Source of the DNA: Iphione sp. A-MEVVRFRX5
Lineage: Eukaryota
Length of the DNA: 64,000 nucleotides
Assembly: GCA_976226885.1 (NCBI GenBank)
Contig: OZ320319.1
Coordinates: 91,822,001 to 91,886,000 of the forward strand
Direction of reading: 5' to 3'
Shown: positions 30,604-63,200 of the stretch, in pieces
Position numbering within the stretch: the stretch's first letter is position 1
Layout: every line of letters starts with the position of its first letter
Program-made: the position numbers and the translations under genes
Notes under the pieces: model-generated
The model's database searches: none
What the model was told of the DNA's origin: nothing
What the model saw: the letters and a program-made list of their open reading frames with translations, nothing else

Positions 30604-30656
30604 CCCGGAAGCACTTGAAACAGGGTCTGGTGGTTCAGGGTCTGGTGGTGTGTCTC

Positions 30657-37260: not shown

Positions 37261-37600
37261 TTTGGGCTGTGACAAGTACACGGAATTAATAAAAAAGGCG
37301 AAAACTGTCTCGGACGATGCGTACGCGTGGTGCTGTCAGGACACTGTCACGGATGAGAAGGGCTTTGTTTGTCTATACCGGAAGCACGTGTACCGATTTC
37401 GAAACTGGCGCGCCAAACTAAGTCGTGCGCGCTGATTGGCCGAGACGCCTGTCACTCACGGAAAAGCGATCGGTGAATTAGGTCCTGGTGGTTTCCTTGG
37501 TCGAAAGGGTGGCAATGTTGGAACAATATCCTTATTGACGCCAGTAGCATCACTGCAGTATGGAATAAATGCATATATTTCTCATTACTGTAGTGCTTAT

Positions 37601-37668
37601 TACTGTAGTACAGTGGTTAGCGCATTTGCTTTTGGATCACATGGCCGGGGTTCGATTCCCCCACCAAC
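37601..37668 (+). other. tRNA-like (Pol III A/B box) sequence, antisense in intron 1 of piggyBac A
   Basis: cagTGGTTAGCGC (A box) ... ggGGTTCGATTCCC (B box). No complete cloverleaf. Confidence 0.65.
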
Positions 37669-38189
37669 CCAACAAATCAACAGTGATGACGAATCTATGT
37701 ACACATCACCTAGCATCATAATATTTCTACTTAATATCTAATTTAGGTATCAGTAGTTCTGTAATACCTTCAACATACGCTAAATAATTGTAGAAGGAAC
37801 TTAAACATATACTTTACTCACTTCACAACTTGCGGACTGTCCCCGGCTGGCCCTATGCCATGGGACATTACAACTTCATCATCTTCTTCCTCGATTCCTA
37901 TATTTCCATCGAAAAGTTCATCCAGCTCATCCTCTTCACCACTAGACATACCACTATTCTCATCGTTTTCTAATGCATTCTTTCCAACTCCACTCTCAAG
38001 GAGATCTTTGGCAATCTGAGCGGTCGATCTAAGTCGTCTAGCAATGATGAATCGTGACATGACAACATTCCGTCACCCATAGTTACGTCGATATATGTCA
38101 TAATCGACCAAACACAATGCAACCATGTTTTCCATATCAAGCAGATTGTCTTTATTCCAAATTTACAAATACCAGCTCATATACTGCTA

Positions 38190-41100
38190 AAATATACACC
38201 AAATTGTCATCAGTCAAAAATGACCGATTTTTCTATGGGTGGTCCTTATAGGGTTATATTTGGGTAACCTGGTTGGTTCCTTAGGAGTATAGCTAGAATG
38301 TCCACAACAATGTTGAACAAGAGGGGTGAGGCTGGACAGCCCTGATGGACCCCCTCCAAGGGGGAAATATTTTGTGGTATACCCATAATTGAGAATACAT
38401 GCTTCAGATTGAAAGTACAAAGATTTGACCATGTTGGTGAAGTACGGTCCCACACCAAAAAGGTGTAAGGCATATAGCAAGAAGTCCAAGCTTACATTGT
38501 CAAATGCTTTTGCAATGTCCATGGCTAGAATTGCGCCTGGGGTATTCTTATGTTGCCAATAATAAATTGTCTTGAATTATTCTATGAACAGTTGATATGG
38601 AACGTTTGGGCAAAAACCGACTTGTGTAGAAGACATATAGTGGGGGAGGGATTTCTTTAGTCTGGAAGCCATTAGAGAGGAGAATATTTTGTAATGGACG
38701 TTAAGGAGGGCAATTGGGCACCAATTCTCTGCATATCTCTTGTCTTTGTCTGCTTCTGGTAACAGTGAAATAATACTTTGTCTTTTGGTGGGGGAGAGGG
38801 AACCTTCCTGGAGGGCATACTGCAGGGCCTGAAAAAGAGGGGTTTGAAGGGAGGTCCGAAATTGCCTATAAAATTCAGTAGAGAGTCTGTCATTCCCGTG
38901 GGTCTTCTCCAGGCGCCGTTGTTTAAGGGCTTCCCTGATTTCTGAACGTGCGATTTTTCTTTCCAGGAGGTCATAGTGGTCTTTGGATAGTTGAGGGACG
39001 TTTGCTTCCCATCCAGGGGGACCTAGGAAGGAGAAAGAGGGAAGGGAGGGGAGAAAAACCGGGGCCTCGGTATCTTTGGGAGAAATGGTCATGGAGGTTA
39101 GCGTTAATTACTTTAATATTTGTGAGGAGTACCCCATTTTGAGATATAAGTGAAGAGATTGGTTTGTACTGACTTTTGACTTTTTCCATTCTGAGGAAGT
39201 ACCTTGACAGCTTTTCACCTGATGTAAACCACTTCAATTTAGACCTGAACAGGGTTGAAGCTCCTTGCTGAGTCTGAATATCCTTAACCTGGATTTTAAT
39301 TAACCAGGCAACAGTGTAGTCAGACCCAGGGTCCGACAGATCAATATCGGCCATTTTGGAGTCATACTCTGCAAGCAAGTTCCTCACCTGTTGATTTTCT
39401 TTTGTTTTTCTTACGAGCATAGTCAGTGGTGAAGCGGGCAATTGAGAATTTTTCAAAGTCCCATGCTGTCAGTGGGTTACTATTTTGTACGTTCGCAGTT
39501 TTATACCACTCTGGAATAGATTTGTTAATTATTTCACAATATGCATCATCATGTAGTAAATGGTTGTCAAATTTCCGTAGTCCTTTTCCCTTAAGGGTCA
39601 GTTCAATATGAAAAGTACGAGATAAAGCTCTGTGGTCAGTATGTGCCACTGTGATTAATTTAATACACGAAACCTGTGGAGAGATGTCCTTGGATACCAT
39701 TATATAGTCTATTCAAGAGGCTTGTGTGATCCATCTATTTTGTCAGGTAAAACCCTACCCTTTTCCTGGTGTACAGGACCAAGTGTCAATAAGATCATTC
39801 ACTGCTAAAACCTCTTTGAGTTTCTTGGTTGGCTGATGGAGATTCGTTGTTGCGAGTCGTCAGCAGGTTGAAAGGCTGGGAGTTGGTTAGTCATATACGT
39901 TTGAATTTCACCTGAAATGTTCAGTTGTAATTCCTGAAAAGATTGAGGTGGTAAGTATACAGACAACACATGAAACACAGAGCCCAGAAGAGATAATTGA
40001 ATATGTATAAAATGACCCTCTGCATTACTATAGACCTTCTGAACCTGGATAAACTCTGATGTTTTGAGAAGTACCAATGTACCCGCTCTCATGGTCGAGC
40101 CGTAGGAGGAGAGCCAGTCACCTTTCCATTGGGATGACCAGAACTGGACGTCTGCTAGTGAGCTGTGAATATCTTGGAGGACGATTAAATCATAGTTGCC
40201 CAAGATGGCCAAAATGGCCTGATGTTTGACTGGATCATGTAGCCCTCTAACGTTGAGAGTCAGCAGGCATAAGTAGGGGAGCATAACCAAGAAGTTATGC
40301 TGGATTCTTGGCGGGTGTGTCATCCTCTGCCAGCCAGGTATGGATGTCCATTAGGTGACGTCCTACATAGTTCTTGTCCTTCCACATCCTTATATTCAGG
40401 GCGTCTCCTGCCCAAAAGGCAGTCTAATGCCCCATTTCTTGTTCACTGAGGCCCAGGAGAGGTGTTTCCGTTTGTAGAAGGAGTTGCTTTGTTGATTCGT
40501 CTGTCCAAATTCTATGCTTGAGTGCTGGGACCAGAATAGCAGACTCGTGGTTGTCTTCTGGGTCATATTCTTGTAGGGTGTATAGAAGCTGGAAGAGTTG
40601 TCTTTTGCTTTCCGCATACATGGCCTTATAGCGGAGAGCATGCAGACAGAGGTTGTCAGCAAGGCGAATGACCAAATATTGGGGGAGTGATTCATAGTTT
40701 CCATCTCGCACCAGGAGATGTGTGGGATATTCCAGTGAGAATGGATGGTTGGCTCCAGCAAATAAATAGACAGCATCACTTTCCTGTGTGGAGAGAGTAC
40801 CGGGGCATAGTAGATATTGAAGTGTGTGCCAATTTTTACTATCATAGGAGTGCCCATCCAGTCTGATAGTAAAGTCTTTGACCCTAACTGAGGTAAACTG
40901 TTGGGTCTCTCTGTCAGCTCTGGCAATCCCATGTAATACATCCAGCCTACCCCTGTGTTCCACCTCCATATCTTCCCTGATCCATATCCTTAGCCTTTTA
41001 TATTTTTTCAATTCCATTTTATGTTGCCTGTTTATGATTCTGTATTGATTTAAACCTGGCTATTGCTGGTCTGTTTTTCAGATTATCAGATCCTAGCCTG

Positions 41101-41880
41101 TAAGCCGGTCAAGTGGAAGTCCTTTGATTCCCATCGCGTCATGAAATAGACCCTCCAATCTCCTCTGTAAAGCTTCTACTGTCTCTTGCGAATCCTCAGG
41201 GATACCATTGAATATTAAGTTAAGACATCTCGCAAGTTTCTCTTGACACAGCGCTAGCTCTTTATCAACCTCTACCCTTCATTGTAATAAGGTAACATAG
41301 GAATTCTTATTGAAAATTTGGCGGTCGTGGTCGTCTATAAATTTGTTAAAAGTGTCCGGTTTGGTCTCATATTGAGTCTGGGTTTCTGCATGGAATTTGA
41401 TATTAGCTGCATTTTCATCGTTTGGGTAAGTAACAAGTGAAGTTTTTCCATTATTACCTTCATGTCATTATTCACAGGCTTTGTTCATCAGGGTTATTTG
41501 CTGGTGGTTGAGTGTGTTTTCCTCCTTACTACCGTTTTCTTCAGGATCACTGTCTCATAAGCTCTGTTTAACCGAGGTGAACTGTTTTTAACATGTCAGT
41601 GTCTTCTTGGCGTTGGAAACTGGAGCGGGGAAAGATGGCAATTGTTGTTTCATCCCAGGCGCGTTTCAGTGTCTGCGACTGGGAGTCCATCTCTGTTTCT
41701 TCCTCCTCGTCCAGAGTCGTGAGTGATGCTCCAGCCAGGGCCACATAGCTGTGGTCAGACGGTTAAATATTTCTTCTTGCCATAAATCTTGACCATTCTC
41801 CTTCACTAGATCTGGAGCTATGGGATTTACCAATGTTCGATGTGTTAATTTCTGAGCATGTAGAATACAAGATGGCAGTA
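38190..41880 (-). mobile_element. L1/Tx1-clade non-LTR retrotransposon, degraded and 3'-truncated
   Basis: ORF1 remnant NLIFNGIPED..DR (about 41200). ORF2 from 40284 has the APE motifs TLNVRGL, LQDIH, SVYLP, TDHRAL; a linker RSKLKWFTSGEKLSRYFLRMEK; and RT motifs EFY, PIALLNVHYKIF, DIAKAFDNV, GVHQGCPASPLLF. It ends at a decayed FxDD near 38210. Confidence 0.9.
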
Positions 41881-42913
41881 ACGCTTAACCAAAGTGGTGT
41901 GGTTGACCTACTTTCAAGGACATTTCAAGGTCCTAATTATATTCAGCGACACATCACATAAATTATCATAAGTGCAAAGTCCTTACTCATTCCGTGTCAA
42001 ATTCCATGAAATTTGTGGTGAGATGGGCGAAAATTTGGGGTCAGGTAATATCCATGGTCCTTCCTACAGGTGTTTCCTGCTTTTTTCACAAATTTGGTTG
42101 TCATATTCCGCCGAAAATGTAGAAAAGGCATTAGCACTTCAGGGGCTAGTCCATACCATAGCCACCCAAAACCGGAACCTGGGAAGGGTAAGTCTCCTGG
42201 TAATGTTCCTGAGTATTTATGTTGTTGAAAAAAAAATGGAGAAATTGATTATATGTGACTGGCGTGGCATGATCTGTCGAAGGCTCAACATGAGTCACCT
42301 GTACTGGTGGTTCTTGTGGGGAGGAGGGTGGAGGGAAATTAATTTGGCATAGTTGTAAGCATGCAGAATCAATGTGATTGTCATGAAAAACGAGAATTTT
42401 TATTATTAATACGTACAAATTGGTTTTACCAATGGGGTTGATAAGATTAATCGAGTCTTGCATGGACAGAAAAACTATTTACAGGAAGATTTGGGCAGCG
42501 GCCAAGGTATGATTTATTTTTCTAGATGATTGATTGACTGAGTGTCCAATATAGTAATAAGATATCAGTAACCATTCAATATTTAACAACACTGTTGAAT
42601 GCCTGACATTTTGGTGGAAAGATCGGTGGTGAAAATCCAACCTACATCTAACCTGCAGAAGTCATGGAGGCAGTAAGAAGCATGTTTCAAGATGAAGAGG
42701 CTGGTCGCTATAACAACTAATATGTTGGCAAGCCAAGGGTAAGCATAGAACATGTCTGGTGATTAACCTCTGCAGAAAGCATTGCAGAGAGTTGATGCAG
42801 TAACAGCGTATGTAACTGAAAAGCTGCAGTTGTAGCAAAAACGACTAGAATAAAGTCAATAAAGTTCAAAGTATGAGTTGTTTCAGTTTTCTTTTCCATA
42901 GTAGTTCCAGCAT

Positions 42914-45470
42914 TCACTGGACAAGCCTGCGGGATTGCAGGATAGTTGCACGCCTGTCATCAAGGGAATGCCACTCTGCAAAGTAGTTACGGTCAGCTGT
43001 CATGCAGAAAGCCATGTTGCATTTCTCATGAGCACACATCCATATGCTCCTTCGTTCCATGCCATGGAGGAGATAGCACAGCCTGCAATTCTGTCGGTGA
43101 TCCAAGTGTTTTGGAACATGCATAGTGTGAAGGACTGAATGTTCACACTGTCATCCTGTAGGTGCTGCAACAGGGAACTCCTCATCATCTGCTATGCCGC
43201 CGAGCTCTCTGACAAGCTGTGTCACACCTGATACATAATGCAAAGTATTAGTATGTGAAGTGATCTTTGTACATAATGTGAGAGGTTTTGTGTCAGAGAT
43301 GCATGAAATAATGTGGCAATATACTTGACTAACACACTGTAGCATCACTAACCAGCACTGGCTTGTCTTCCTCATCATTGTGCTCTCTCTACAATTGCTT
43401 GTAAATTATGTGGCTGTTGACAATGGCGATATCCAACAGGTGGAAAAAAGAGTCTTCCACCACCTGTAAGTCAGCAGCAATTGATCAGACAAGTCAACAG
43501 CACCCATCTGTTTGTTTTAGTCCATGATGGCAGACGGCTTGCAGACCATTACAGGATGGAAGTTCCCTGCTGGCTCTTTCAGGTTTCTTTTTACCATTTC
43601 AAAGTCGTGACCTCTGTGCATGGTTGAGCAGATGTTAACATGTTTTGTCCATCCACTAAATGAGCACCATGCCATTCTGTTGTACATAGCGCATGTCCCA
43701 ACGACGGGATTTCCTTATCCAGGCCTTATCTTTCAACACCTGCAACAGTAGCTGTGAATATGTCAAGCCTACAGCAGCAGTGACGAATGCTAAATCAGAA
43801 AATTGCACCAACTGATTGTATTCACATCTAAACATGTTGAAGGTCAAATACCAGACAGCACACAATTCTGTTTGCATTGTCACTTAGTTAACTCACCTGT
43901 GGAAAGCCTCCCCTTGCAGGATTGATTATACCACAGACACCGACACCATCTTCACACAAGTAGTCGACGAGGGGTATGGAGGTATAAAAATTGTTGATAA
44001 ACAGTGCATATACCTGATTGAGGTAGTCTGCCATCAGCTACGTCACCACATCAAAGGCAAGCCCATGGGGGCCAGGGTTCTCGTGTTTTCCCGTATAAAC
44101 ACTGGAAAAACACAATGCAAGCATAAGTACTAACCAGAACCACATACAGCCCATACAACGAAGCAATGGTCATCATGCATGTCTTGATACTTATATATGT
44201 AATTGATTTTCACTAATTTGAGTAGGTGACTATTTCTCTTACAATTTGTACCCGAATCGGACGGGTTTCAATGGCATGTATTGCCTAATTCCTGAACGGC
44301 CTTTAGATTTGACCATTCGCTCATCAATGGCGATTCACCTGTCTGGCTGACTCAGCTCCTTGCATTTGACTTCATGTGTGTAAGCAATGGTTCCAACTTT
44401 GCCAGCTTTTGAGTAGGGGCCTCTTGGGGTCTGCAACATGTAGTAAAGCTAGGAGTGCATTGAATCTGAAAAGATTAGACACCAAAGAAATGTTAGACAT
44501 CAGTTGAACCACTTTACATGCCAAGCTCAGACACATCTGTATGATTTTAACATGGCAGTCCATAATACCGTTTTACACTGTACCTATTTCATGCCAGGAA
44601 ACGTCTCGCCCATCCTCCATTATACAGGAATGTTGTTGACCAGTATCTATGTATATCTGGTAGTTTGTGGAACCCCATCATTATGAGGAGCCCAAGGAAA
44701 GCCTGCATCTCCTTTGGGGTAACCTCCTCCCATGCACCGTCAGCTTTCTTTGCATATGTCAGCTTGCTGTGTACATGCCACCAGGCATATGTATTCGTGT
44801 TGGGGCTTAACCCCTATCAAAGGAAGAAGAATCCAAAGTGTAATTCAACAACTTATGAACGCATATGCAATAGAAAAGAATGTCAATGTGGAATGAATGC
44901 GTCAGGAACAGGGTTGGAACCACTTGCTGGCCATCCACATTTATCATCAAAATTAGCATATATTTCAAGAACACTTGACAATTGGACAGTATTTCACAAT
45001 AAATATTTGTCATTAACTCAATCTACCTCAAATACTACAGAGAAAACTAGTAATTCCTATTCACTTACATCTTTGACATACTTGATCCGCTAGGTTGTCT
45101 TCTGCTAAAATTCGCATCACTTCCATCCTCGGTCTCATCACTTATCAAATTCCTGCTAAATCTGCATCAAACATGTCTTCCTCATCTTCAGAAAGAACTT
45201 CCACGGTTGTATTTCTAAATCTATCAGGGTTGATTTCCTTCAAAATCATTTGGCGACTTTCAGCTTCGCTTCACCTCGGTCTGTCCATGGTTGCCCAAAG
45301 GCGGCAAGAACGACAAGTTATCCAGACAAAATCAAAAGAAGTCAAACTAGCTTTTTTCCATAATTTTTATTCCACGCATCACAATAATTGTTTTTTTTTC
45401 GTCATTTCTGTCATTAAAAAAAACACATCTTTATCCTCAAATCGCCCATTGGCTATCTAAGCCAAGAGAC
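42914..45470 (-). pseudogene. piggyBac-like transposase copy D, degraded
   Basis: ATG at 45288 (MDRPR..). Motifs: NTYAWWH..EMQAFLGLL; IAIDERMVKSKGRSGIRQYMP; VYTG..NNFYTS; C-terminal CRLCY..C..C..FC..WH. The 5' flank aligns with the first bases of copy B but lacks the TIR. Confidence 0.85.
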
Positions 45471-46495
45471 TAGTATCTTTCACTATGTGAATACATTTTT
45501 TCAACAGAGATGTAAAGATTGTGAGAAGACAGAAAAGCTCCTAATGGCTGCTTCCAGTTTCCTGTTAGGCCATGCAACATGAACACACAGGCCTGATTTG
45601 CTACATATTTTGTTTTGCCTACTGGTCCCAAATCTTCAAAACCGACAACCTCATCCAAATGTTCAGAGTAATGTTAAGACTCTTTGACAGACATTTCATC
45701 ATACATTAGCACACAGGGCTTTGACATAGGATTACACTGATTTTTGGCATATGTGGATAAACCTTTGAACACTATTTCATGGAAACCAGTACTAATCTCC
45801 ATTTTTCGCATGGTACTCTTAAGGTTATTGATAGACGGTAGTACAAATATTTTCCTTAGAAGTTGATACAAAGCAGGACTTTTATGGTACAAACTGAATG
45901 TGACTTTTTTGTCATGTTCAGACCATCATCTACCACGTTTGGGAAGCTTTACCAACAGTAATTTGCCTCTTGACAAAGAGAAATGCTTCTTCTGATAATT
46001 TTGCTTGCAAATGCCTCAAAATGACAAAGAAATGCTTCTTCAGATAATTTTGCTTGCAAATGCCTCAAAATCGCTTCTTTACTTGGACTTTGGACCTTAT
46101 GAAGTATATTCTTTAATCTGTGCACCTTAGGTTGAGGAGCCTGATTCCTTTCAAAAGCTTGAGATTGCTAGAAGACATAGGACTTTTCATTTCCATCATC
46201 ACATATGGATGATCAAAGGCTATTACTGACAGTGATGCTGGTACATTAGTGACACATGACCTGTTACCTTAACACCTTCCTGACCGCTCATAGGCTTATC
46301 CGCCACTTTGGGTGGATAAGGATCTCGTCTAAACCAGTAAGAAATTGTGCAATTTTTTGTTAATAAACATATACAATGGGCTTAAATATTATTTTAAAGG
46401 AAATAAAGGAAAAGAAGAAAAAAGTGTTTTTGTCATTTAATATATACATGGATAACAAGAAGCGTTCTGTCCGTCTGCCGCGCCAAGTGAGTACG

Positions 46496-49415
46496 ATGGA
46501 TAGGCCTCGTAGGTCTGCTGCTGAGCGGGCGAAAGTATCAATTTCTTGTGGTTACACTGCCTCTGTTGTTGAAAACCAACACACAACGTGCTTAGCACCA
46601 GAGGAAGAGGATATTCTTGATGATGAGCTGGCTGGTGAAGAAGTTCTCATAGGCTCCACCAACAATGATACGGAAGATGTGGACAACCATGTGTTTACTT
46701 TCGGTTCAAATATGTCGAAGACGTAAGTCTTACCATTATTTATAGTTATTAATGGTTAAACAAAGTAAAAATCATAAATTATATGTTCCATCATGGCTTT
46801 GATATGTTATATTAAGTTAGAAATGAGCTATCACCTTTTCTTTCTATGAATGGGAAAATTGGAAAAATGTCACCTGCAGGGGGTTCGAACCCAGTACCTC
46901 TCATTCAGTGGCAAAAGACGTTACCACTGCGCCACTGAGTTCCATCACCAGCAGCGCGTAACATGGCTACATATACTAACTGTGATAGCTTCTTGGCCAA
47001 ATTTAAAGGCAGGATGTAACAGAATTTTTGTCATATTTATTTAAATATAATACATCAATGAGTAATATTTTTTCATGTTTTTTTTCCAGGTATTATTCGT
47101 ACAATGACGCTGAGGAGAAACCAAGTGTCCCAGAATTTGCCCCTAACCGCCCCATAGGACCCCATCTACCTGGAGCTACTCGAACTCACAATCCATACAC
47201 CAGAGCTGTGGATTTCTTCTGTCTTTTCTTCTCTGAGGCAATGATTCAGGTTGGTTATGATTTCTGTTTTATCCAAATTCATGTTTGTCATTTCCTATCA
47301 GACTATTCATACCAAACAATGTGGTAAGTATGAAAGTATCACAACATTTTTCTTATGTCTTTACAGTTGTTGTGTGACCACAGCAATACATACGCGTGGT
47401 TACATATCCTCGATAAACCCACCTATGGAAACCCAGACAGAGCATGGACAAACATCACCACCGATGAGATAAAACGATTCCTGGCACTCCTCATCATGAT
47501 GGGTTTTACGAGCCACCCTGACATTGCAAGATACTGGGCAACCCATCCTCTCTACAGTGGGGGATGGGCCAGGAGATTCCTGTCAAGGAACAGGTAATTG
47601 TCTGCATCTGAACAAATGAATTTATACATGCTCGGTTCTGCACCTTATGTCTGCAGTTGACAAGTATGAGAACTACTGTAGTGGTTGGTCTAATGAGAAT
47701 TATTTCCTGACACATTTACATAGCTTCAAAGCACTGCTGGCCTTTCTTCATGTTTCCAACCCTGGTGAGCATGATCCTGATAACAAGCTGTGCAAGTTGG
47801 AGCCCCTGTTGCAACACATCAGGACTGTATGTGCCGACCTCTTCCAGCCCAATAAATCAATTGCCATAGACGAGAGGATGGTGAAGTCCAAAGCAAGGTC
47901 CGGGATCAGGCAATACCTACCACAAAAGCCTGTTCGTTTCGGATATAAATTGTGGTGTGTTTGCAACTCGGCTACTGGCTACACATTGGACTTCAAGTGA
48001 GCACAATATACAGTCAGTCGAAAAAAAGAATGGACGTTTATAAGTGCGCATGTATGATTTGTTTGTCTAAACAAGGTACATTGCTCAAATCGATATGAAG
48101 GACTGTACATAAGAGGTACAATTTATAACTTTGTTGTTCTTCCAGTGTGTACACGGGTAAACGTAAGCAACCTAGCAAAATTGGACTTGCCTACGATGTT
48201 GTCATGACACTCATGGCCAAGTACAAGCAACAAGGCTACAACCTTTATGTTGACAACTTCTACTCTTCAACTCATCTGTTCCAAGCCCTGCATGCGGATG
48301 GTGTTGTTGCTTGCGGCACCATGCAGCAAACAAGGAGAGGATTTCCACAGGTATGTAAATGAAATGTCACTTGTTACTGCTTACTAGAAACATGGGCCTC
48401 TTCTGCCAATATTGTTGATCTTACCCATCATACAAAAGACCCATGAAGATAATTCGATGGTAATTTATTTCATTTCCTCTTGTATAGGAACTGAGAGATA
48501 AGGCATGGCTCAAGACAGCAACGAGAGGCAACATGAGATGGGTTCGAAAGGGAATTCTCTTGTTCCTTCAATGGGTAGACACGCGTGCAGTGCAAATCTG
48601 TTCGAGCATCCACAGAGGGGCAGACTATTACATGGTGCAGAGACGGATGAAAGACCCAAAGAGAAACTATAGGCCAATCATAATCCGAAAACCAGCAGCC
48701 CTCATGGACTACTGCAAACAGATGGGCGGGGTCGACCTGTCCGACCAGTTGATACAGCCGTACAACATCCTTATGAAATGCCACCGGTGGTGGAAAACCT
48801 TATTTTTCCACCTGATAGATGTTGCGGTTGTAAACAGTTTTGTACTGTTCAAGCAGTGGAGGGATGTACATCCAGACGATCCACGAATGAAAAGACCTGC
48901 AGGTGCTTGTTATAAATGTTTCTTTATTCTTCGTTGTGTTCATAACAAAACCTAATAACTTGCAACTACGAATTTCTGAACAGTTAATATAAACCCGGAC
49001 CATATGGAACAGTCATTATTTCAAGAACTGTTTTGCATTTATATTTCTATTCTTAGGCTTCTCTCAGCTGGCATTTCGAGAAGAGCTATGTATGCAACTT
49101 GCAGACATCACAGATGAGGAGACGACACCGGTTGCCACCAACACAAACAAGGCAATCTACCGAACAGCATTCCACACGGCCCACATCCCCATCCATACTG
49201 ACCGAAGGCAGAACTGCAAACTCTGCTATGTGATAGATGGCAAGGAGTGTCAATCTCGGTGGCTCTGCAGGCATCCATACTGCCAAATTCCTCTCTGTAT
49301 GAATGCAGAGAGGAACTGCTTTGAGACATGGCACTCCCCTTCATTTGATGACAAGAGGCATCTCATTATTGCGGCCTGCCGCCGTTCTGGTCCACACAAG
49401 GTTGATGAAAGTTAG
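46496..49415 (+). CDS. intact 7-exon piggyBac transposase (621 aa; 637 aa from the ATG at 46448)
   Basis: Exons 46496-46722, 47090-47249, 47367-47593, 47724-47996, 48146-48350, 48488-48902 and 49057-49415 are all GT-AG, phase-compatible and stop-free. Catalytic motifs IDERM, VDNFY and GGVD are present, plus a C-terminal cysteine-rich finger. Confidence 0.92.
46873..46940 (-). other. tRNA-like sequence, antisense in intron 1 of piggyBac B
   Basis: Reverse complement: ctcagTGGCGCAGTGGtaacgtcttttgccactgaatgagaggtactgGGTTCGAACCccctgcagg. The A and B boxes are intact; the anticodon stem is not paired. Confidence 0.75.
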
Positions 49416-52409
49416 GCCAGGCAACCACAAGCAGTCTCCCATATTAAGGTGATCGATCATCCAGTCATCTTGGGGGCTGCATTCACTTTGACTTGGGATA
49501 AGTCATGGCTACCAACTCTTTGTATGAGACATGGTAAACCTGCAATACAAGGATTACATAACAACAGATGACTTGTATGTTTTGCAAAGCTTAGGAAAAT
49601 GATATTTGCCAAAATTTCCAAATAATTCTAATTCATGCTGATACACAAGAAGCACACTTTCGTGTATATGTGTGTGGCTATAAAAAAATACAACTGAGTT
49701 CTTACCCCATCATGTCCCTCATACTGATGATCATATGCACCACTGTCTGTTTTAGGGAAACGTTCGCGGATAGTGAGCCGGACTTCTAGGGGCCAACAAT
49801 ATGTCTCATGATCTCCACCAAGTCTAGCAGAAAACTCGAAAACATACACGTATAAGCTTCATAGGAAGAACATAATAAGAATGCAAATAACTGAAATGCA
49901 AGATTTATATCCTTTTATTGCAATGGTTCATTCGACTACATGAGAGTAATAAAAAAATTATTACATGTCATACCTTTGCAGAGGCCCACAGTTTTTTGTA
50001 TATAGTTTTCCGATCTTTTCCATTCTGGATCAAACTGATCAAACCCATAGGTACAGGTAATCTGTTAAAATGAACAATACCAATTCATTCTGTATGGTTC
50101 AAACCTAGGTGTGACAAACGGTAGGTATACAGCAGGCAAAATAATCAATACAACATGAATACTCATAAGTGTAGATAAACACGTGCTACATCATACTTCG
50201 AACGACATCATACCAAATAAGTTGAAATATACTAGTTCACATTTTAATTTCATGAAAATAATATGCCCCCTATATGCATAAATCACTTACCCACGATATC
50301 TGAAAGCATCCATTAATGATTCCATTCTTGAGCATTTGCTATTTTGAGATTACAGTGCCTTGTGCAACAGATCGTCAAAATGCTTACTCCGAAAACACCG
50401 CCCACAAAACTCATGACGTCAGTGTCAATGTCTGTGTACACAAGAAATTATCATATTACAGTTTGCTTCATAATTGAAAACATCCATTGCAAAAACATTG
50501 ATCTGTCATTAATATTACTTCAGAGCGATTATTAATTTGCTTTTATACACCACATCTTCTCGTGATTTACGTCCCATGAAACTGACATGGGCGCCACTTT
50601 GACGTACAGTGGCCCTTCACTGAAATACACATGGCAGGTGCTGCCATCTTCATTTGATTGTTGTTTTAACACCATTTGACGTACATTATATATCGATACA
50701 TCAATGTTTAGAGTAGAAAATGCACAAAAAATCACTCATTGCAATATTACCCTTAAAATAGCTCCTTCATTGATAAATTCCATGTTAAAAATTGTGCAGC
50801 CGTTTGAATAACGTTTTTCGGTACTCGCACATATCATGTCCATACTTTTACTTATATTTCATTCTATTCATTTATTTAAATAAGCTCACTACTGTATGCA
50901 GTATTTTATTACCTTCATTTTGATATGAAGATCACCTTCCTAGGACAAACATAAATAACATAAATCGATATTTACAAAAAGACCTCAGTTTACTAAGCGC
51001 TATACAGCGATTTCGCCGGTCAGGATAGTGTTAATGTAAAGTTTTAGCACTTTTTTGGGTGGACTGTTGGATGGTTGTCTTGTTACAAGAGGTTGCTTAA
51101 CTGTATCCTGCTTCAGTGGATTCTGATAATCTATGATTGTTGGCACAGCATTCAGCATCAAACGTGGCTTCCTGTGAAGCGAGTGTCAAATATTCAATAT
51201 TTGAAGTGAAAGGACTGTAAGTTATACCAGCAAAATCCAATCACGCATTATGTTTATTAGGATGTCATTGTTAAAAGGACGAGAGGTGAATACACTGATT
51301 CCTCGAATTGCTTAAGAATAGTTTTTATGAGTATTCTCGGTAATTTGGTCATTGAAACATGTCTTGCATCGTAATACAGTGATAGATGATTGCAATGCTT
51401 ACTTATCATATGTTGGAGTTCATTTGGACTCTTCTTACCGAGATCCTGTCTCCTTATGTTCAGAACCCAAAGTACACATCTGAAATATTTCACACAAGTT
51501 CACATTACATTGGGTATATGATCACAAGGTAATTTCCCTAACATTTCTATGGGCTTTCATACTTTTGCCAGGTGGCTGGTTTTCCATATAACCACTCATG
51601 AAATAATTTATCATCTTTTACATTTACATTTAAAATATTACATGAACATATACAAGCATGTTTAGAAATTGGTCTTATAGGAATTACCTTATTCCATTAT
51701 CAAACACACCAACACTACAAAATAGAAACTTACTGTAGGTAACATTTGATTAAGGCAAAACATTGACTTATCATTAGTGATCACCTATCTTTATCTTTCC
51801 GGAAGCTATGGTAGGTTATACCATCGGTTAGACCTTGGTAATGAGGGCAATTGATTGCAGCACACTGCTTCCTGTAATTATGTTTAAATCGACCTTTAAT
51901 GCATATTGGTGCCATTTTTCTGCTATGTAGGCCCTCTACATAACCAAATAGGCACATTAGCTGCAGTCTCCAAAGGAATAACATCCATGTTATCAAAAAA
52001 CACCAGTGCAATATAGAACAACAAAAATGCAATGTGCATACTATCAACAGGTTGTGTCTCCTTTCAAGCATATAGTTAGACCAAGACTGACCAGCTTGGT
52101 ATGTTTTGAAATCCTGTGCCTGGTACGCAAAGATGTGCTATCTACTGCAATTACGATGGTATATTGACATGTTCTGCACACGATGCAGAATGTCTTCATA
52201 TACTAAAAGCATAAATATTTTCAAGAGTAATGAAGTGAATGACAAAAGGTAACTTATGATATAGAATAAGCGAAACCAAGAAGAGGAAGTCAAAACTATA
52301 AGCTTAGTTAAATCATGTAGATTCAGTGTAATATTTGTACCTTGGCATATCAAACTGGAAGCCGTGTTCAGAACTAACCTAGGAATGAATTGACACGGAT
52401 GTTCTGTTC

Positions 52410-54250: not shown

Positions 54251-55293
54251 GTTACTTATACAAATCAAAATTCATGCTGTTCCTGATAATTCTGTACTTA
54301 CCTTAGCCATAGGCGACAGGTAGGTTGAATTCTGGTTTGTAGAAGAATGTAGCCTGGAGAGAGGGCATGTGAGAACGAGGCTCCGCTAGATGTCATCTGC
54401 AGATTTATGGCTCCTGTTGGCTTCACTTTGGAATCTGAATGGAAACAAGATGGAGAGAGAGAGAGATACAAAGGAAATATGTCTCTCCAGTATCTGGACC
54501 CATGATGGAAACTGGCCCAGTGAATGATTGTGTGCCGGACTTGTACCAACAAGAGTCTTAGGGTTGGGTTTCGTTGTTTAAGATAGAACTGCTGGAAGGT
54601 GTGTTCGTCCACCCACATCCCGCGCTTGAGAATTTCATGGAGTGGTAAGCCCGAGACATGTAGTTTCGAGGCACTGGCGGCTCTAGTGCTATGGGCTGAG
54701 TAAACTGATGTGTCTATTCCCGCTTGAAATGATATCTCTTTTACCCATCTGCTCAAGGTAGGGGTGGTAACTGAATGATACGGTGGAACGTAACTGATGC
54801 GTAAAGTAAGCGAGCTGATCTCCCCTAATGTCCCTTGTCCTGTGAATGTACTCTCGAACGTGTGAGACAACACATAGTTGGGGGTCTTGATTGTAAGGAA
54901 CTAGAATGATACGACTGGGTGTTTTGCCTTGCCTATTGTGCTTAAGTGGTGCTGCAAAGTGTATTTGTAACCTTTTGTGTCCAACCTGGTGTATAGTATC
55001 TAACTGAATGTTACGAACTGTTTGTAATCGCCCACAAGAGGCCAATAACACTAACATGACAGTTTTTAATGTGAACTGTATTAAAGTTAACCTGTGAGAT
55101 CTATCCCAATTCATTAAGAAATCTAAAACCACTTCCATATCCCAAGTGTGCTCCAGTCGAGCTGTTGGGGGTCTCAGATTGAACATTCCCCCAAGGATCC
55201 AGCATGTTAGCCAATGTTGGCTGAAAGGAACCCTATTGTATTTCTTCATTACTGCTGACAGGGCGCTACGCGCTTTATAAAGACTGCTATTAA

Positions 55294-58008
55294 GAGAATA
55301 CTATAAGAGTGTGGGCGCCCAACCGGCCGTTCGAGCTCAGTTTGCACTGAGCGAGACGGCTGGTTGGGCGCACACCCTTATAGTATTCTGTTTATTATAC
55401 TCCATTTCATTGCGAAAAATTGCTGAAAAATGCATTTTTGACAAGGTGAAATAAATAGTCTGTTTACTTACCACGCCATTTTGAGTCTAGGATGATGGTA
55501 CTTCCGGTTCCTATTGACGTTTTTTTTATGCGATTAATTTTTCGTAAATTATATCTTGGGAGCATTAGTAGTTTCAAGAATGACTGGAATAAGGTTAAAA
55601 TACGTTTTGAAAATGTTCTTTATTGATTGTTTCAAGTATTCGAACGGTTCCAAGAAAAGTTGTAGAGATATTTTTTCATAGGTTGGCGCGGACTGGTATG
55701 TACTGCACACTGTACTCGCGGCAGCTGGAAATTTGGGACCCGGGCTCCTTGCTTTATCAAAAGAAGAACTTATTCTACTCAAATACACATGGCGGCTGCA
55801 TTTAGAGTTTAATGTTAATGTTAATTGTGCTCTGTGAAAATGTATTGCCAGTCATGAGTCCCTGCAACAGCTGCTTTTGCAACTTCATCGCTTTGGCTTG
55901 CCCGGACTGGTCCACGAGTTCCACCTGACACTGCAACACAATTGTTATGACCCATTGCTTTTCTCGACGTCTCCAGGTTGCCAGAAAGACGATTGAAGCA
56001 GTAGTTATAATGGTAGTGAACATTTTGCACACGTACAGTTTCTGTTTGTGATGAAGGAATGTCATCTTCTTCCTCGACGGTTGGATTCGATGCATTTTCT
56101 AGCAAAGCCACATCCAAGGATGTCCCTGAGGGAGGAGTTGTCTCAGAACCACATGCTGATTTGGGTGCTTCTACGACTTCATCCTGAAAAATACGAACAG
56201 AATACATGAAGGTTAGTTTTAGTGATTGCCATTAATATTTAGTGTACTGTGTGTATAAATTTAGGAAATGTACTAGTAATTTGCTGCATACCTGCCATGT
56301 CACAGATTTCTTGGGTGCCTTGGGAGGTGGTGCCCCAAGTGATGCAGAGGGTGTGCATTTGCCCGAAAGGATGGAGTACATACTTTTCTGCTGCTCATAA
56401 GAAGCATTTGAGTTTTGGTTTAAGCTGGTTACTGACTTGTGCCCAGATAGCTGGGCTACCATTGTCGGTGGCACTCCGGCATGCAGGAGAGTTGAACAAG
56501 ACGTTTTGCATCCCGAATGGTTAGTTTTTTTAGCAACCAAGTTGGCCTCTCCAGACATTTTCTTCATTATTCTGCTGATTTCGTTAGCACCCATTGGTAA
56601 GCACGAGAACCAGGTGTCTGAATCCGGTCGTCTCTTGTAATTTATCGATAGGAAGTATGGCGCCTCGTCCACTAGCATTTTCTGAGGGCGGTGACGTGCA
56701 TGTTCCTGGTGGAGGAATATTGGGCATCAGACTGGCTTTTCGTGATTTCTCCACATTTTCGGTGAGAATGCCCTGGCTTCATTGTTTGCACCATCCCTTG
56801 TCTTTGTATCCCTTTCTTGGAACTGCAAATATGTGTGCCCTTTCGAGTCGTGTCTTTCCTGAATATCACCCCATCTTAGCTGTCGTGCCTCTTGGTGGCC
56901 ACGAAATCCAAGAAACTTCGTGAATAGGAACCATAGGGCGTTGCGGAGTGCCTTTGGGTCATCGGGGCCCATTATTCGTTTTGACCATAATGTTTCTTCT
57001 TCCTCCTCCGTAACGGCTTCTGACTGAAAAGGGGGGGTTTGAATTTGTGTTAGATACCAATTATGTAGATGCATTATAAAAATCCGCAAAATTTAATGAA
57101 AAGCACTGACAGTCGGCCGGAAGTCGTCTGCAGCTGCGCCATTTTGAAGGCTCAATGAATGTAATGTAAACAAAACAAGACTATGACGAAAAGTGGCCAG
57201 AAGCTTACTTTAGGAAATTTCTTATAACATGAGTACTGATTAATTCACTCACCTTGTTAGGCTTGTTGCCCATTCCTTCGGATTTTAGTTGCTTTTTATG
57301 ACTCTCAATGATTTTTCGGCATGTGTTGAACTCCACATCCGTCACGACATTTTTCCCGTATTTTTTCTGATCGAGGTGCCTTTTTACACTGCCAAATATA
57401 CATGGTTCGTAGTTCTCGCCACTTGCTTTCTAAACATTCAGGAAATACTTCTCAAGGGCTATGTCAAGTTGCTTGGGAGGCATATCCTCTATGTTTCTCC
57501 CCTCTCCTTGTTCTCTCAAGAATTCATGGATTTTGGTGACATCTCTGGTGGTTTTTCGTACAGTACTGGGATTACGACTCTTTGCAATGTAGTCCCTCAA
57601 CATTGTTTCTGTTTCTTTGAAATCATCATCATCGTCGTCAAATATCACTGTTGGAATGTCTGCAGATCCCTCATCTTCATCTCTTGCTGCTTGCTCGACA
57701 TCAAAGGTTACTTCAGGATCTGGTCCTGTCGTTTTCTTTTTCTCCTTGTTGCTGTCTTTGAAGCCATAGAATACTATATCCTTGGGGCCTGATGCTACCC
57801 ACTCTGACAGGGACATATTGAGTTGTTCAATATCCTTTTCAGCCATTTCTGGACAATGGTTGACAACGCACTAATGTATTTCACTAAAGAACCACTAGGG
57901 GGGGTGTGTGTAGGTGGTCAATACGGCCCAAGGTGGTCAATATGACATGTAATATTGACCACCTTTGCCCATATTATATTTCTACATTATATCTGCATAG
58001 GAGTATAA
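55294..58008 (-). mobile_element. Crypton (tyrosine-recombinase DNA transposon) inserted in the DIRS YR gene
   Basis: Flanked by a TAA direct repeat (55291-55293 and 58009-58011). The empty site joins DIRS ...AGLGF to ...ARSALS. There is a ~95-nt hairpin at 55295-55389, and a 13-bp inverted repeat at 55391-55403 and 58000-58012. Confidence 0.85.
55805..57846 (-). pseudogene. Crypton tyrosine recombinase (DUF3504/KCTD1-ZMYM-like), disrupted
   Basis: TVRKTTRD..LEKYF..GENYEP; an intron; then EEEETLWSKRIMGPDDPKALRNALWF..GFRGHQE..ERDTKTRDG; PMGANEIS; TNHSG(C)KT..TLL; QLSGHKSVTSL. Several stops, and the R and Y catalytic positions appear altered. Confidence 0.85.
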
Positions 58009-59650: not shown

Positions 59651-62600
59651 CCCTATCCTGACCGCGGGATTTGGCGCACTAACAGTGAGAACTGGGGGTG
59701 CATTTTAAAAATGACTATCTATGTAAGCAATACTTACTGCTGAAAGTCCATTGATATATTAAAAGAAAGAGAAGAAAATGAAACATTTTTTAAGGGACTT
59801 CTTGAACGAATTGGATTCAATAAATTTTGACAGCAAACGAAAGAATTGAGAATTTTTTGTACTGGAGACATAGTTTTTTGGCACTTACCTGGAAACAGTT
59901 GGGAAAATATCAAGGAAGGAGGCTTTTAGAGGGGTTATTGCAATGTATGCATTTTAGGGAATTTTGTATTGTGTCTTTGAAGGCATAAATGAACATTATA
60001 CGATAACGAGTATGGTAGCTACACTTAAGTGAAGGTGGCAGCACCAAACAGTAGTTTTGCTGCAAAACAACCACTGAACGTCATAGTGGCGCTGATGTAG
60101 ATTTTTTGTGACGTTACACGTGGTTGATTGTTCATTTTTCTTAAATAATTCACTCTAAATGAATAGAGTCTGTATAAAATCAAAGGAGATGGCTGCATGG
60201 AGATATGTTATGAATGAATACAAAAAATTAGCTTTGTGAAAAGAAATATTTATTTGTGATAATGACGTCATTCTGAAAGGCGAGTACAATGCATCCTGAC
60301 ACAAGTTGCTCATATGATCACCAGTATGAAAACCAGCCTGGGGTAATGCAGCATTTTTTAGCTGTCAGATAGTGCATGGTTTTGAAATGTAAGATAGTAC
60401 AGGAAACCTGGAAATTAACCAAAAAAAAACCGAAATTTGTTTTACTGTTGAGTGCAATGCTTCTGTACTCAAACAGCCATTGACATTGCAGGTCTACCAT
60501 GTGACTTATGCAGAGCTGACATCCCTCACTTACCCAAAGCCGAAGTGATGTGTCTGATGTGACCTAACAGTCCCCCTGCTCCATGCAACGGCAAGACTCC
60601 AGCACGATATGTCTGCGATCATCAAACAAGGGGGAATGCCATTTTTCATAGCAGTTCCTCTCTGAGTATAGGCAGAGAGGGATCAGATACTGCGGATGCT
60701 TACAGACCCACCTTGTCCTGTACTCTTTACCCTCAGTGACGTAGCAGAGCTTGCAATTTTGCCTTTTCTCTGAGTGCACAGGGATGTGTGATGTGTGGAA
60801 GGTGGTGTAGTACGTTGACTTGTTGGTGTTGACAGCCACAGGTGGGCTCTCATCATCTTTGATGTCTGCCAACTGCATAACCAGTTCTTCTCAGAACGCA
60901 AGCTGGGAATATGCTGCACAGGACGAGAGTAAACATGTATTGCATTGTTCAAAGTAAAACCTATATAGATGTAAGTGTTATCAGATTTCAGATTTCAAAT
61001 AGTTACTTGTAGTTATGAACAATAGTACAATAAAGAAAATATTTCTCGTATGTGCCAGCTGGTCTTTTCAACTGATGATCACCTGGGTGTAGCGCAGCCC
61101 ACTGTTTGAACAAGATGTAGCTGTTGACAACAGCTACATCTACCAGGTGAAAAAACAATGTCTTCCACCATCGGTGGCACTTCATGAGTATGTTGTACGG
61201 CTGGATCAGTTGATCGCTCAGATCCACGCCACCCATGTACCTGTTATAGTCCATTATTGCTTGTGGCTTACGCACCATGATGGGCCTGAAGGTCCCATTT
61301 GGATCTTTCAGCCGACGTTGCACCATCACATAATCAGGTCCCCTGTGGATTGTGCTGCAGATGTGCACTGCAAGTGTCCAACCATTGTAGGTAGAGGATG
61401 TTTCTCCTGCGAACCCACCTCATGTCACCTCTTTTAGAATGCCTTGTCCAAGTCTTGTCCCTTAGCCCTTCTGGGAAGCCTTTCCTGGTTGCCAAGGTTG
61501 TGCTGCACACACTGAAGCCATCTTCTTGGAGGGTGGACAACAGCTGGGTAGAAGATTAAAAGTTATCAAAATACAGATGATAACCTTGCTTCATGTATCT
61601 TTCCATAAGGGTCAACACCACATCATAGGCAAGGCCATGCTGACCAGGCTTCTCACGTTTTCTAGTATATACATTCAAGTTCAGTGTATATCCTGTGGCT
61701 GAATCACATACACACCACAGCTTATAGCCGAACCTAACTGGTTTTTGTGGCATGTATTGTCGAATGCCAGATCTTGCCTTTGACTTCACCATCCTTTCAT
61801 CGATAGCAATGGACTGGTTAGGTTGAAACAGGTCTGCACATACTGCCTTCATATGAAGCAGGAGAGGGTTGAGCTTACAGAGTTTGATCTTTGGATCATC
61901 GCTGTCAGGGTCAGACACATGCATAAATGCAAGCATCGCCTTGAACCTGTGAGAATGACAAATAAATGACATTTAGTTGATGGAATAACATTGAAATGTA
62001 ACAGTCATCAGTGAATTCAATATTTCATATTTGCACTCAGAAACGATGTGATTACTTACCTATTGCGAGACTGGAATCTCCTGGCCCAGCCACCAGAGTA
62101 TAAAGGACAGGTTGCCCAGTATCTGGATATATCTGCCAGACGGATGAAACCCATCATTAGAAGAAGTCCAATGAATCTCTTCTTTTCATCAAGGGTTATA
62201 TCTTCCCATGAACCATCGATCCTTGCATATGTAGGCTTGTCTAGTATATTCAGCCAGGTGTACGTGTTACTGTTGTCGCACAATGTCTGTAAGTAAGGCA
62301 AGCCAATAGTATGAGTACACAATACAATATAGATAGCACTGCATGTGTATATGGGCAATGAGCAATTCAGACAATTCACATATATGAAGGAAATAACAAT
62401 GACAACCTCACCTGCAACAACTCTGCTGTGAAGAAGAATCCAGTGCTGTGGTATATCTATTCTGTCCACCTGTCCCAGTTCCTGGCAGATATGGCCCTAT
62501 GGGACGATTGGGGGTGAATGACTGGATCCCCTTGTCAGTATCTCCATATGAGTAATACCTGACACGATAGAAAGAATATATCAATATGAAGCACATCGTT

Positions 62601-63200
62601 TAGTAAATATATCTACCATATATACTACTCACTTACGTCATACATAGTACAGTCTCGGTGGTGAAATGGTTACATCATTTGACACTGAATGGGAAAAGTT
62701 GGTTCGATCCCGGTATGGGGCAAAAATTTTTTTCTAGTAAAATTGGGAAGACATCAAATCAACAGACACAGCATATTTTCCAGACATATTTCTAATAAGT
62801 TCTTGCAATTTTACAGTTAATGAACCATTTTTTTTCAATGAAACAATAGAAATCACTAAACACTTACGTTTTTGACATAGCAGAAGATACTGAGGATGTA
62901 CGATCAGCTCCACTCTGACTAGTAGGAATGTCAGCATCATCATCATACTGGTCACCACAAATAATCTGCTCATCCAAAAAATCTTCCTCTTCAGGAGATA
63001 AATATGTCATATGTAGAGATTGAACATCTTGGAACCTGATTCCTCGAGAAATTAACAATTTAGCGCGCTCTGCTGCACTTCTACGTGGCCTCTCCATCTT
63101 GGCGGCTACGGCAAAGAGCCTCCTACTAACAAGAGGGTCAACTCCCATTGGTCTATGCATAACACCACCAGATGGTGCTGCCATCTAGTGTTATGACTGT
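59651..63200 (-). mobile_element. piggyBac-like transposon copy C, inserted at TTAA in the DIRS pol N-terminus
   Basis: TTAA at 59647-59650 followed by CCCTATCCTGACCG (3' TIR). The gene spans 63097-60564 (MERPRRSAAERAK..IDERM..DNF..GGVD..CKLC) with a frameshift in exon 2 and stops. The 5' TIR was not found in the window. Confidence 0.88.
62654..62720 (+). other. tRNA-like sequence, antisense in intron 1 of piggyBac C
   Basis: ctcggTGGTGAAATGGttacatcatttgacactgaatgggaaaagttGGTTCGATCCcgg aligns with the copy-B sequence. Confidence 0.72.

Follow-up and report, generated by a model that had tools for sequence, protein, structure and literature searches.

The window (the whole 64 kb stretch of DNA analysed) contains four copies of a piggyBac transposase gene, designated A to D, and the first intron of each includes a short tRNA-like cassette, or the remnant of one, in antisense orientation (Table 1). 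Two further intron-rich copies, L005 and L023, lie on contigs of another eukaryote and also have an antisense unit in intron 1. The transposase gene of element B has seven exons between positions 46376 and 49412, with no stop or frameshift in any exon block (as judged block by block and not from an assembled spliced product), and the DDD motifs IDERM, YVDNF and GGVDLSD are legible in the exons; three of the exons match the Pfam family PF13843 (DDE_Tnp_1_7) with E values from 1e-14 to 1e-19. Copy C is without both of the introns between e4, e5 and e6. Exons 1 and 2 of copy A, both missed by tblastn, carry ARRLRSTAQIAK (which resembles RPRRSAAERAK) and PPFRPRKPPGPN, respectively, and each has a phase-2 GTGAGT donor; exon 1 also matches exon 1 of L023 (E 0.001). 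The fragments at 26562-25150 are probably the remaining exons, e3-e6, of copy A.

Element B and L005 are true transposons. Element B has a TTAA and CACCTTCCTGACCG within positions 46264-46286, with the inverted partner within 51017-51039, and in L005 TTAACCCCTTGC... is at 7764-7786 with its partner at 14950-14972. No element ends (TTAA or terminal inverted repeats) were found for copies A, C and D. The presence of TTAA and terminal inverted repeats in B and L005 speaks against the copies being domesticated host genes. That the cassette is a hidden coding exon was also considered and rejected; GSNPVP, the shared peptide, is no more than an in-frame reading of the B box, there are stops nearby, and no splice sites were seen around it.

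Table 1. The piggyBac copies in the window and the antisense units in their first introns.
Feature	Coordinates	Strand	Description
Copy A	37462..38072	-	exon 1 38072-37822, intron 1 37821-37553, exon 2 37552-37462
Cassette A	37599..37670	+	tRNA-Gln(UUG)-like unit in intron 1 of copy A
Copy D	42926..45357	-	heavily decayed; exon 1 ends at 45069
Cassette D	44860..44933	+	decayed remnant in dead copy D; GGTTGGAACC at 44912-44921
Element B	46272..51030	+	TTAA-flanked; 14-nt terminal inverted repeats CACCTTCCTGACCG / CACTATCCTGACCG, 12/14 matching
Intron 1 of copy B	46723..47089	+	phase 2, GTAAGT...CAG
T-run of cassette B	46863..46867	-	TTTTT, begins 13 nt past the B box; position of a Pol III terminator
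Cassette B	46868..46946	-	tRNA-like unit in intron 1 of copy B; profile match E 3.8e-17
Copy C	60567..63184	-	in-frame stop 61556-61558; frameshift near 61420; intron 1 62560-62867
Cassette C	62648..62722	+	tRNA-like unit in intron 1 of copy C
T-run of cassette C	62727..62733	+	TTTTTTT, begins 15 nt past the B box

The B box was searched for throughout the window with GGTTCGANNCC, using shuffled sequence as the expectation. Perfect matches occur at exactly three loci in the 64 kb, compared to 0.15 expected from the shuffles, and all three are antisense to the transposase and inside intron 1 of copies A, B and C, where the original prediction had placed them. Cassette B has a perfect A box (TGGCGCAGTGG) as well as a perfect B box (GGTTCGAACCC, 46881-46891), the starts of which are 43 nt apart. 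The perfect B boxes of cassettes A (GGTTCGATTCC, 37649-37659) and C (GGTTCGATCCC, 62701-62711) are accompanied by A boxes with one and two mismatches and spacings of 43 and 42 nt, respectively. In copy D both boxes have been lost, and the decayed B box claimed for it is present at the predicted position. Among the units in the other genome, L023 has perfect A and B boxes, and the A box of L005 has three mismatches to TRGCNNAGTGG. Five of the six units (A, B, C, L005 and L023) thus have a perfect type-2 B box and the 42-43 nt spacing of A-box and B-box starts that is found in tRNA genes, and in four of them (B, C, L005 and L023) a T4-T7 run begins 13-15 nt past the B box. There is no T-run terminator in cassettes A and D, which are in probably dead copies (in A, none was found before exon 1). 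The four units examined for a TATA-like motif (A, B, C and L005) each have one 22-37 nt upstream, which was discounted as a significant feature given the A+T-rich introns and an estimated chance of about 0.05.

The resemblance to tRNA is incomplete. ARAGORN reports no tRNA in the window at default settings, and at 90% of its threshold makes only two calls in the whole window, cassette A (Gln, ttg) and cassette C. Only cassette A scores with the Rfam tRNA model, and its 22.6 bits are below the gathering score of 29; the units in the window are accordingly not credible tRNAs, and the earlier observation that no full cloverleaf forms is borne out. Across the units, pairing amounts to 42% in the acceptor stem and 37% in the D stem. 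The L005 unit is the only one called by ARAGORN at default (as tRNA-Trp), and it is not listed by the Rfam tRNA model. The putative anticodons are Gln(UUG)-like in A and Trp(CCA) in L005, the L023 loop is ACAGCGC without U33, and cassettes B and C have no credible anticodon arm; the orthologous copies do not share an anticodon or tRNA identity. Judged from its sequence, the cassette is a predicted Pol III-type module, and neither a SINE nor a decoding tRNA.

The six cassette-bearing copies (A-D, L005 and L023) form one clade with a support of 0.98, and in all six the unit is in the same intron and orientation. The original prediction of a fixed place for the cassette therefore stands with regard to the intron, and needs qualification with regard to distance. 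The cassette ends had been put at 153, 150 and 147 nt from exon 1 in A, B and C, in agreement with the 162, 158 and 156 nt that we find between the exon-1 end and the B box (146 nt in D); this gap is constant only within about 16 nt in the window, and is 206-220 nt in L005 and L023. None of the ten intron-poor relatives outside the clade has a cassette, and a scan of JGI metagenomes yielded 14 intronless relatives, used as outgroups, all of which are without a tRNA-like unit. Best matches in a representative library are about 50% identical and mostly intronless. There is no cassette at L006 and L007, and L003 and L004 contain only 3' fragments of related copies. A search for further family members with the exon-1 protein gave no match, an exact look-up of L005 exon 1 gave no further copy, and searches with exon 6 and exons 4/5 gave only fragments with about 50-70% identity.

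Several cassette segments are common to copies from the two genomes. The 19-nt T arm is identical in A and L005, the stretch GGCCGGGGTTCGATTCCC is common to A, L005 and L023, and the 5' half of the cassette is common to B and L023, such that the shared states form a mosaic. No target-site duplication is evident: direct repeats common to the 45-nt flanks reach at most 5 nt, which is no better than in shuffles. Similarity between copies stops with the 72-75 nt unit, with the T-run directly after it and no SINE body or tail, and a search of the 64-kb window and about 250 kb of fetched loci with an nhmmer profile of the cassette recovers the intron-1 units and no other copy. Tests for a SINE origin thus came out in favour of the original prediction, in which the cassette is an inherited part of the transposon and not the product of four SINE insertions. 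A single acquisition of the unit, with inheritance by all descendants, can be concluded with high confidence.

Conservation of the cassette was evaluated from the six copies in two genomes, with two independent pairs available for comparing cassette and flanks. Synonymous sites are saturated between the transposase genes of B and C (pS 0.81, with dN 0.23), and alignment of the two gives a z of 10.4 for the cassette and of -0.7 and 0.7 for its flanks, which is the level of shuffles. The cassette is the sole intronic HSP between B and C (74.6% identity over 59 nt), as anticipated from the earlier observation that these cassettes align and the surrounding intron does not. The cassette of B also aligns with those of A (z 6.7) and D (z 4.0). 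In the other genome, comparison of L005 and L023 gives a z of 7.3 for the cassette and of -0.4 and -0.9 for the flanks, and the 3' half of the cassette is the third-best HSP between the whole elements. In both pairs the cassette is much more conserved than its flanks, and its preferential conservation, the shared place and the clade all support the original prediction, whose suggested functions (antisense regulator, TFIIIC insulator or chromatin opener) are putative. We note that an island of conservation in a transposon intron is detectable here from a handful of diverged copies. The pattern in the two independent pairs argues that the unit has probably been kept by purifying selection, and the element appears to need it.

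We propose that an ancestor of the intron-rich piggyBac clade acquired a tRNA-gene-like unit once, antisense in intron 1, that all its descendants inherited it, and that purifying selection has probably kept the unit while the surrounding intron drifted to randomness. The preserved feature would be the architecture of a type-2 Pol III gene (A box, B box and T-run) and not a decoding tRNA. Given that the anticodon loops are not alike and that pairing fails in the acceptor and D stems, selection most likely acts on the ability of the DNA at the 5' end of the element to assemble TFIIIC, TFIIIB and Pol III, which we infer with moderate confidence. Taken as a whole, an inherited and selected Pol III unit controlling the transposase in cis is the best explanation, and is the one that on balance we favour.

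A Pol III complex positioned head-on to Pol II in the first intron could act as a roadblock or gate on transposase transcription. Cis control of the host transposase gene in this manner is the likeliest consequence that the geometry suggests, and we put it forward tentatively. As the six copies share one ancestor, the fact that they agree in antisense orientation and in position does not count as independent evidence of function. Two considerations speak against a roadblock: antisense is perhaps the sole tolerated orientation, since a tRNA-like fold in the sense strand would expose the pre-mRNA to RNase P/Z, and a self-limiting device is not obviously favoured by selection on a transposon. A precedent for the arrangement is Polr3e, in which, according to a 2017 report (PMC5358760), the first intron of a Pol II gene harbours an antisense tRNA-derived SINE that is conserved between species, has heavy Pol III occupancy, and lowers the output of the host gene by transcriptional interference; in a reporter, interference occurred only with the antisense orientation. 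The piggyBac cassette is likewise a type-2 Pol III unit that is antisense in a first intron and conserved across lineages, in this case in six of six clade members. Whereas the Polr3e unit is one SINE copy at a fixed place in one host gene, the cassette travels with a cut-and-paste transposon and has no SINE body, and its Pol III occupancy and effect on the transposase gene are putative.

Ranking close behind a roadblock, though itself rather doubtful, is the possibility that this Pol III/TFIIIC module, again inherited and selected, serves to counter silencing or to form a chromatin boundary. With TFIIIC and TFIIIB bound near the promoter, the 5' end would stay nucleosome-free and heterochromatin would be stopped from spreading, so that insertions could be expressed anywhere, and this role would be independent of orientation. 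Consistent with it, the B box is the most invariant part of the unit as well as being perfect in five of six, cassette B lies next to exon 1, some 600 bp in from the 5' end of its element, and the spacer towards exon 1 is held at 146-162 nt in four copies while the intron length on the far side of the cassette ranges between 46 and 143 nt; the spacer of 206-220 nt in L005 and L023 fits less well. A boundary would also directly raise the fitness of the transposon itself. Barriers formed by tRNA genes and TFIIIC sites are established, and those at fission-yeast centromere 1 (PMC2040200) and ETC sites (PMC3395662), for example, similarly have a B box or tRNA-type promoter beside a Pol II promoter, kept for recruitment to DNA and not for decoding. 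ETC sites with only a B box are, however, reported to bind TFIIIC and to work as boundaries although they do not recruit Pol III (PMC3395662), whereas the piggyBac unit has also retained its A box, the distance between A and B boxes and a terminator at a precise position, which points to real Pol III transcription. Those barriers are moreover fixed chromosomal sites, unlike the unit described here, which is built into a transposon and whose barrier role is putative. To our knowledge, no known tDNA or TFIIIC barrier is a built-in part of a DNA transposon.

Alternatively, the RNA product may be what matters, with the unit being a cargo gene for a tRNA-like RNA of about 85-90 nt, or fragments of it, that would act in trans, perhaps by titrating a silencing or processing factor of the host or by misdirecting it. 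The terminator is at a fixed offset in four lineages, and B and C agree best in the middle of the unit (17/20). The anticodon and T stems are 80% and 79% paired, with both-sided changes in four pairs, which hints at a constraint at the RNA level that a DNA-only role would not need. The best Rfam match of the L005 unit is to mascRNA/menRNA (RF01684), a processed tRNA-like RNA, although the score of 23.5 bits is below the gathering score of 42.5. The units resemble mascRNA in having a tRNA-like fold with good T and anticodon arms and no decoding role, but mascRNA is cut from a sense Pol II transcript and the piggyBac unit has its own predicted Pol III promoter and terminator. We nonetheless consider a functional RNA unlikely, as covariation in the cloverleaf (from five sequences only) is not significant with slid-partner controls scoring about as well, single-sequence folds are no better than shuffles, and the middle region is only 30-40% identical between the two genomes.

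It is similarly improbable that a tRNA gene or pseudogene was captured once and has since been a neutral relic, its G+C-rich sequence seeming conserved because it decays slowly or is occasionally converted by genomic tRNA genes. Few pairs can be compared, any two tRNA-derived sequences share A and B boxes whatever their history, and the terminator has been lost in the dead copies A and D and both boxes in D, so the unit decays once a copy dies. Against neutrality, the B and C cassettes retain 69% identity over a 65-nt core with a single 1-nt indel, even though synonymous sites are saturated and the introns are at shuffle level, and the second genome repeats this pattern. Conversion by differing tRNA genes would furthermore not keep the middle that is specific to B and C, or the mosaic states shared across genomes.

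Insertions of a tRNA-derived SINE or of duplicated tRNA genes, arising independently at a hotspot in intron 1 of separate piggyBac copies, might account for the differing putative anticodons, for the low identity of the L005 unit to the window units outside the T arm (43-52%, about the level expected of two unrelated tRNAs) and for a second, unrelated tRNA-like B-box sequence in L005 near 13870-13960, but are highly improbable given the same intron, strand and offset range (146-220 nt) in six of six copies, the lack of the unit in all ten relatives outside the clade, the absence of target-site duplications, SINE body, tail or copies elsewhere in the loci searched, and a probability near 1e-6, calculated from the coordinates, that three random placements in 64 kb would fall within about 940 nt of intron 1. 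As in tRNA-derived SINEs, A and B boxes are present in a tRNA-related head and the cloverleaf is degenerate; the units differ from such SINEs in having no body, no A-rich or LINE-derived tail, and no target-site duplications or dispersed copies in the available sequence, with a terminator directly after the unit.

Mollusc Tc1-like elements likewise have a cut-and-paste transposase gene that is split by old inherited spliceosomal introns (bioRxiv 10.1101/656579). The piggyBac copies differ from these in having a conserved non-coding gene within the intron, none being mentioned in the available portion of that preprint.

Returning to the favoured explanation of an inherited Pol III unit acting on the transposase, it is conceivable, if somewhat short of probable, that this transposon lineage has long carried its own Pol III gene in intron 1 of the transposase, using the Pol III machinery or a small RNA to control or protect its Pol II-driven transposase. 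Transposons target tRNA genes, and SINEs derive from them. No DNA transposon maintaining a Pol III unit as its own part came up in a literature search, and if the proposal is true, it would be a two-polymerase regulatory design built into a DNA transposon, for which we have met no description in any such element. New SINE or MITE families could then also arise from such a mobile tRNA-like promoter. Provided that it recruits TFIIIC and Pol III, the unit would serve as a portable module of natural origin that regulates or protects the transposase gene at any insertion site, and would bear on how transposons escape position effects or limit themselves, on interference between Pol II and Pol III inside genes, and on the design of piggyBac-based vectors.

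The window, which is eukaryotic DNA, contains several intron-bearing piggyBac copies, and copies A, B, C and D each carry in intron 1 a cassette, a tRNA-like unit with the A and B boxes of a Pol III promoter (decayed in D). The B-box motif GGTTCGANNCC occurs at three loci in the 64 kb (0.15 are expected from dinucleotide shuffles), one within the first intron of each of A, B and C and on the strand opposite to the transposase. Re-measurement of the boxes, antisense setting and intron 1 placement in all four copies bears out the original prediction, although the "fixed place" that it proposed is a similar offset, constant only within about 16 nt.

Features of the piggyBac copies in the window and of the related loci L005 and L023
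Feature	Coordinates	Strand	Description	A-box mismatches	B-box mismatches	A-start to B-start (nt)	T-run	Exon 1 end to B box (nt)
Copy A exon 1	38072-37822	-	family motifs, phase-2 donor
Copy A exon 2	37552-37462	-	family motifs
Copy B exons	between 46376 and 49412	+	Pfam DDE_Tnp_1_7 matched in three exons
Element around copy B	46272-51030		TTAA both sides, terminal inverted repeats
Copy C	63184-60567	-	in-frame stop 61556-61558, frameshift near 61420
Copy D	45357-42926	-	heavily decayed
B exon 1 (M.RP.R to donor)	46496-46722
L005 exon 1 (M.RP.R to donor)	7999-8225
L023 exon 1 (M.RP.R to donor)	5457-5683		MARPRRAAASRAL...
B conserved 3' blocks	49483-49546, 50569-50781
C conserved 3' blocks	60548-60485, 60114-59902
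L005 element			7.2 kb, TTAA/TIR-bounded
Cassette A		antisense	intron 1	1	0	43	none	162
Cassette B		antisense	intron 1	0	0	43	TTTTT 13 nt after B box	158
Cassette C		antisense	intron 1	2	0	42	TTTTTTT 15 nt after B box	156
Cassette D	B box 44912-44921	antisense	intron 1	2	2 (GGTTGGAACC)	31	none	146
L005 cassette	8421-8490	antisense	intron 1; ARAGORN default tRNA-Trp(CCA)				TTTTT directly after	206
L023 cassette		antisense	intron 1	0	0		TTTT 15 nt after B box	220

Copy B shows no stops or frameshifts across its seven exon blocks, and copy C is without two introns. Non-coding blocks 3' of the transposase stop codon are 66-73% identical between these two copies and may belong to a second small gene or to the 3' end region. 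Exons 1 and 2 of copy A are not found by tblastn with the exons of B; they contain ARRLRSTAQIAK, similar to RPRRSAAERAK, an acidic stretch, and PPFRPRKPPGPN, similar to PNRPIGPHLP, with the same phase-2 donor, and exon 1 matches that of L023 (E 0.001). Fragments at 26562-25150 are probably the later exons of this copy. In the would-be 11-kb intron 2, a 70-bp tandem repeat with units ~90% identical forms long arrays at 28727-30609 and 32782-33262, inverted relative to each other. Directly downstream of exon 2 on the same strand is a THAP zinc finger-like open frame (C..C...FP...W...C..; 37048-37335, minus strand), which may constitute a gene of its own or else an exon joined to piggyBac exons 1 and 2; positions 37400-37470 are rich in CpG and include an inverted CCAAT box. 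Just upstream of exon 1, successive open frames (38214-41017, minus strand), among them segments that resemble an endonuclease and a reverse transcriptase, look, from their translations judged by eye, like a decayed non-LTR retrotransposon. Elsewhere in the window are two near-perfect palindromes or hairpins (55289-55395 and 57920-57975), the first of which matches the mir-2483 model below threshold (33 bits; gathering score 75).

L005 and L023, both intron-rich, come from a different eukaryote in the assembly of ENA sample ERZ25767047; with them the cassette-bearing set comprises six lineages in two genomes. Exon 1 of L005 (MVRPVRASAKRA...) runs to a phase-2 GTAAGA donor, and exons 2-7 are in the same order as in B (tblastn). 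Exon 1, counted from the conserved M.RP.R start as far as the phase-2 donor, has a length of exactly 227 nt in B, L005 and L023 (230 nt in C); the peptides are only ~30-50% identical. The TTAA-bounded L005 element also contains another tRNA-like sequence (13870-13960, plus strand) that is not related to the intron 1 unit and lies in sense orientation ~1.2 kb past the stop codon. Its B box, GGTTCGAGTCC, is followed by several T-runs, and either a later SINE insertion or a further Pol III unit may account for it.

Over 532 aligned codons, B and C have a saturated pS of 0.81 and a dN of 0.23; they are old relatives, and because of this saturation neutral sequence between them is expected to be unalignable. 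The cassette aligns with a z of 10.4, whereas the intron segments flanking it score no better than shuffles (z -0.7 and 0.7). When the whole loci are compared at high sensitivity, the cassette is the sole intronic HSP (74.6% over 59 nt), the others being exons and some 3' non-coding blocks, and its core (69% identity across 65 columns, one 1-nt gap) is about as conserved as codon positions 1 and 2 (21% different). L005 and L023 are a second, independent pair that repeats this outcome: exons are ~70% identical, the cassette has a z of 7.3 with flanks at shuffle level (-0.4 and -0.9), and only two HSPs between the whole elements rank above its 3' half (83% over 42 nt). The cassette is thus conserved beyond its flanking intron in both pairs, as had been proposed, and a neutral relic is an improbable account of it.

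In a FastTree (LG) phylogeny of concatenated exon 3-6 peptides, with A entered by its distal exons, A, B, C, D, L005 and L023, all intron-rich and cassette-bearing, form one clade (support 0.98). Ten intron-poor relatives fall outside it (L001, L002, L006, L008, L009, L011, L012, L014, L024, L025), and the tRNA-like unit was found in none of the ten. Cassette states are shared as a mosaic among copies: A, L005 and L023 have the T arm GGCCGGGGTTCGATTCCC in common, a stretch of 19 identical nt is the sole non-exonic HSP between A and L005, and B and L023 share the 5' half AACTCAGT.GC..AGTGGTA. We found no target-site duplications around the units, no SINE body or tail past the 72-75 nt unit, and no further copies with an nhmmer cassette profile in the window and about 250 kb of fetched loci. 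Together with the single clade, these results effectively exclude independent SINE insertions, in agreement with the earlier view that the cassette is inherited with the transposon; one acquisition in the clade stem followed by inheritance is by far the simplest reading.

The window units do not form a full cloverleaf, as first noted. ARAGORN at its default threshold reports no tRNA in the window, the Rfam tRNA model lists only A among the window units (22.6 bits, under the gathering score of 29), and single-sequence folds are no better than shuffles; when its threshold is lowered to 90%, ARAGORN calls cassettes A (Gln, ttg) and C and nothing else in the window. We judge none of the A-D units to be a credible tRNA. 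Five of the six units have an invariant B box, and the A box, A-B spacing and T-run position are also retained. Pairing on a cloverleaf template is 80% in the anticodon stem and 79% in the T stem, with 42% in the acceptor stem and 37% in the D stem; covariation is not significant (five sequences), and the anticodon loops are UUG-like, CCA, or without a plausible anticodon. The pattern is that of a type-2 Pol III unit freed from making a decoding tRNA; that its product acts in trans as a small tRNA-like RNA seems improbable.

Selection probably acts on the assembly of TFIIIC, TFIIIB and Pol III at the element's 5' end. Our tentative choice for the likeliest mechanism is a head-on Pol III roadblock that could gate transposase transcription. 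An experimental precedent with exactly this geometry is the MIR of Polr3e, a mammal-conserved Pol III unit that lies antisense within intron 1 of a Pol II gene; it is heavily occupied by Pol III and lowers Polr3e expression by transcriptional interference, in a reporter only when antisense (PMC5358760). The piggyBac unit is known from sequence alone. A TFIIIC/tDNA-type chromatin boundary keeping the element's promoter open wherever it inserts is a main rival explanation and only a little less likely; it would be more obviously favoured by selection on a transposon and fits the conserved ~150-nt spacer towards exon 1 in the window copies. Because all copies derive from one ancestor, their common orientation does not count as separate evidence for a function; antisense may simply be the sole tolerated orientation, since by our reasoning the pre-mRNA could be exposed to RNase P/Z by a tRNA-like fold in sense orientation.

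tRNA-type Pol III units, intronic Pol III interference, tDNA barriers and intron-bearing mollusc transposons are all known. Judged by titles and abstracts, literature searches yielded no description of a DNA transposon that maintains a Pol III unit of its own.
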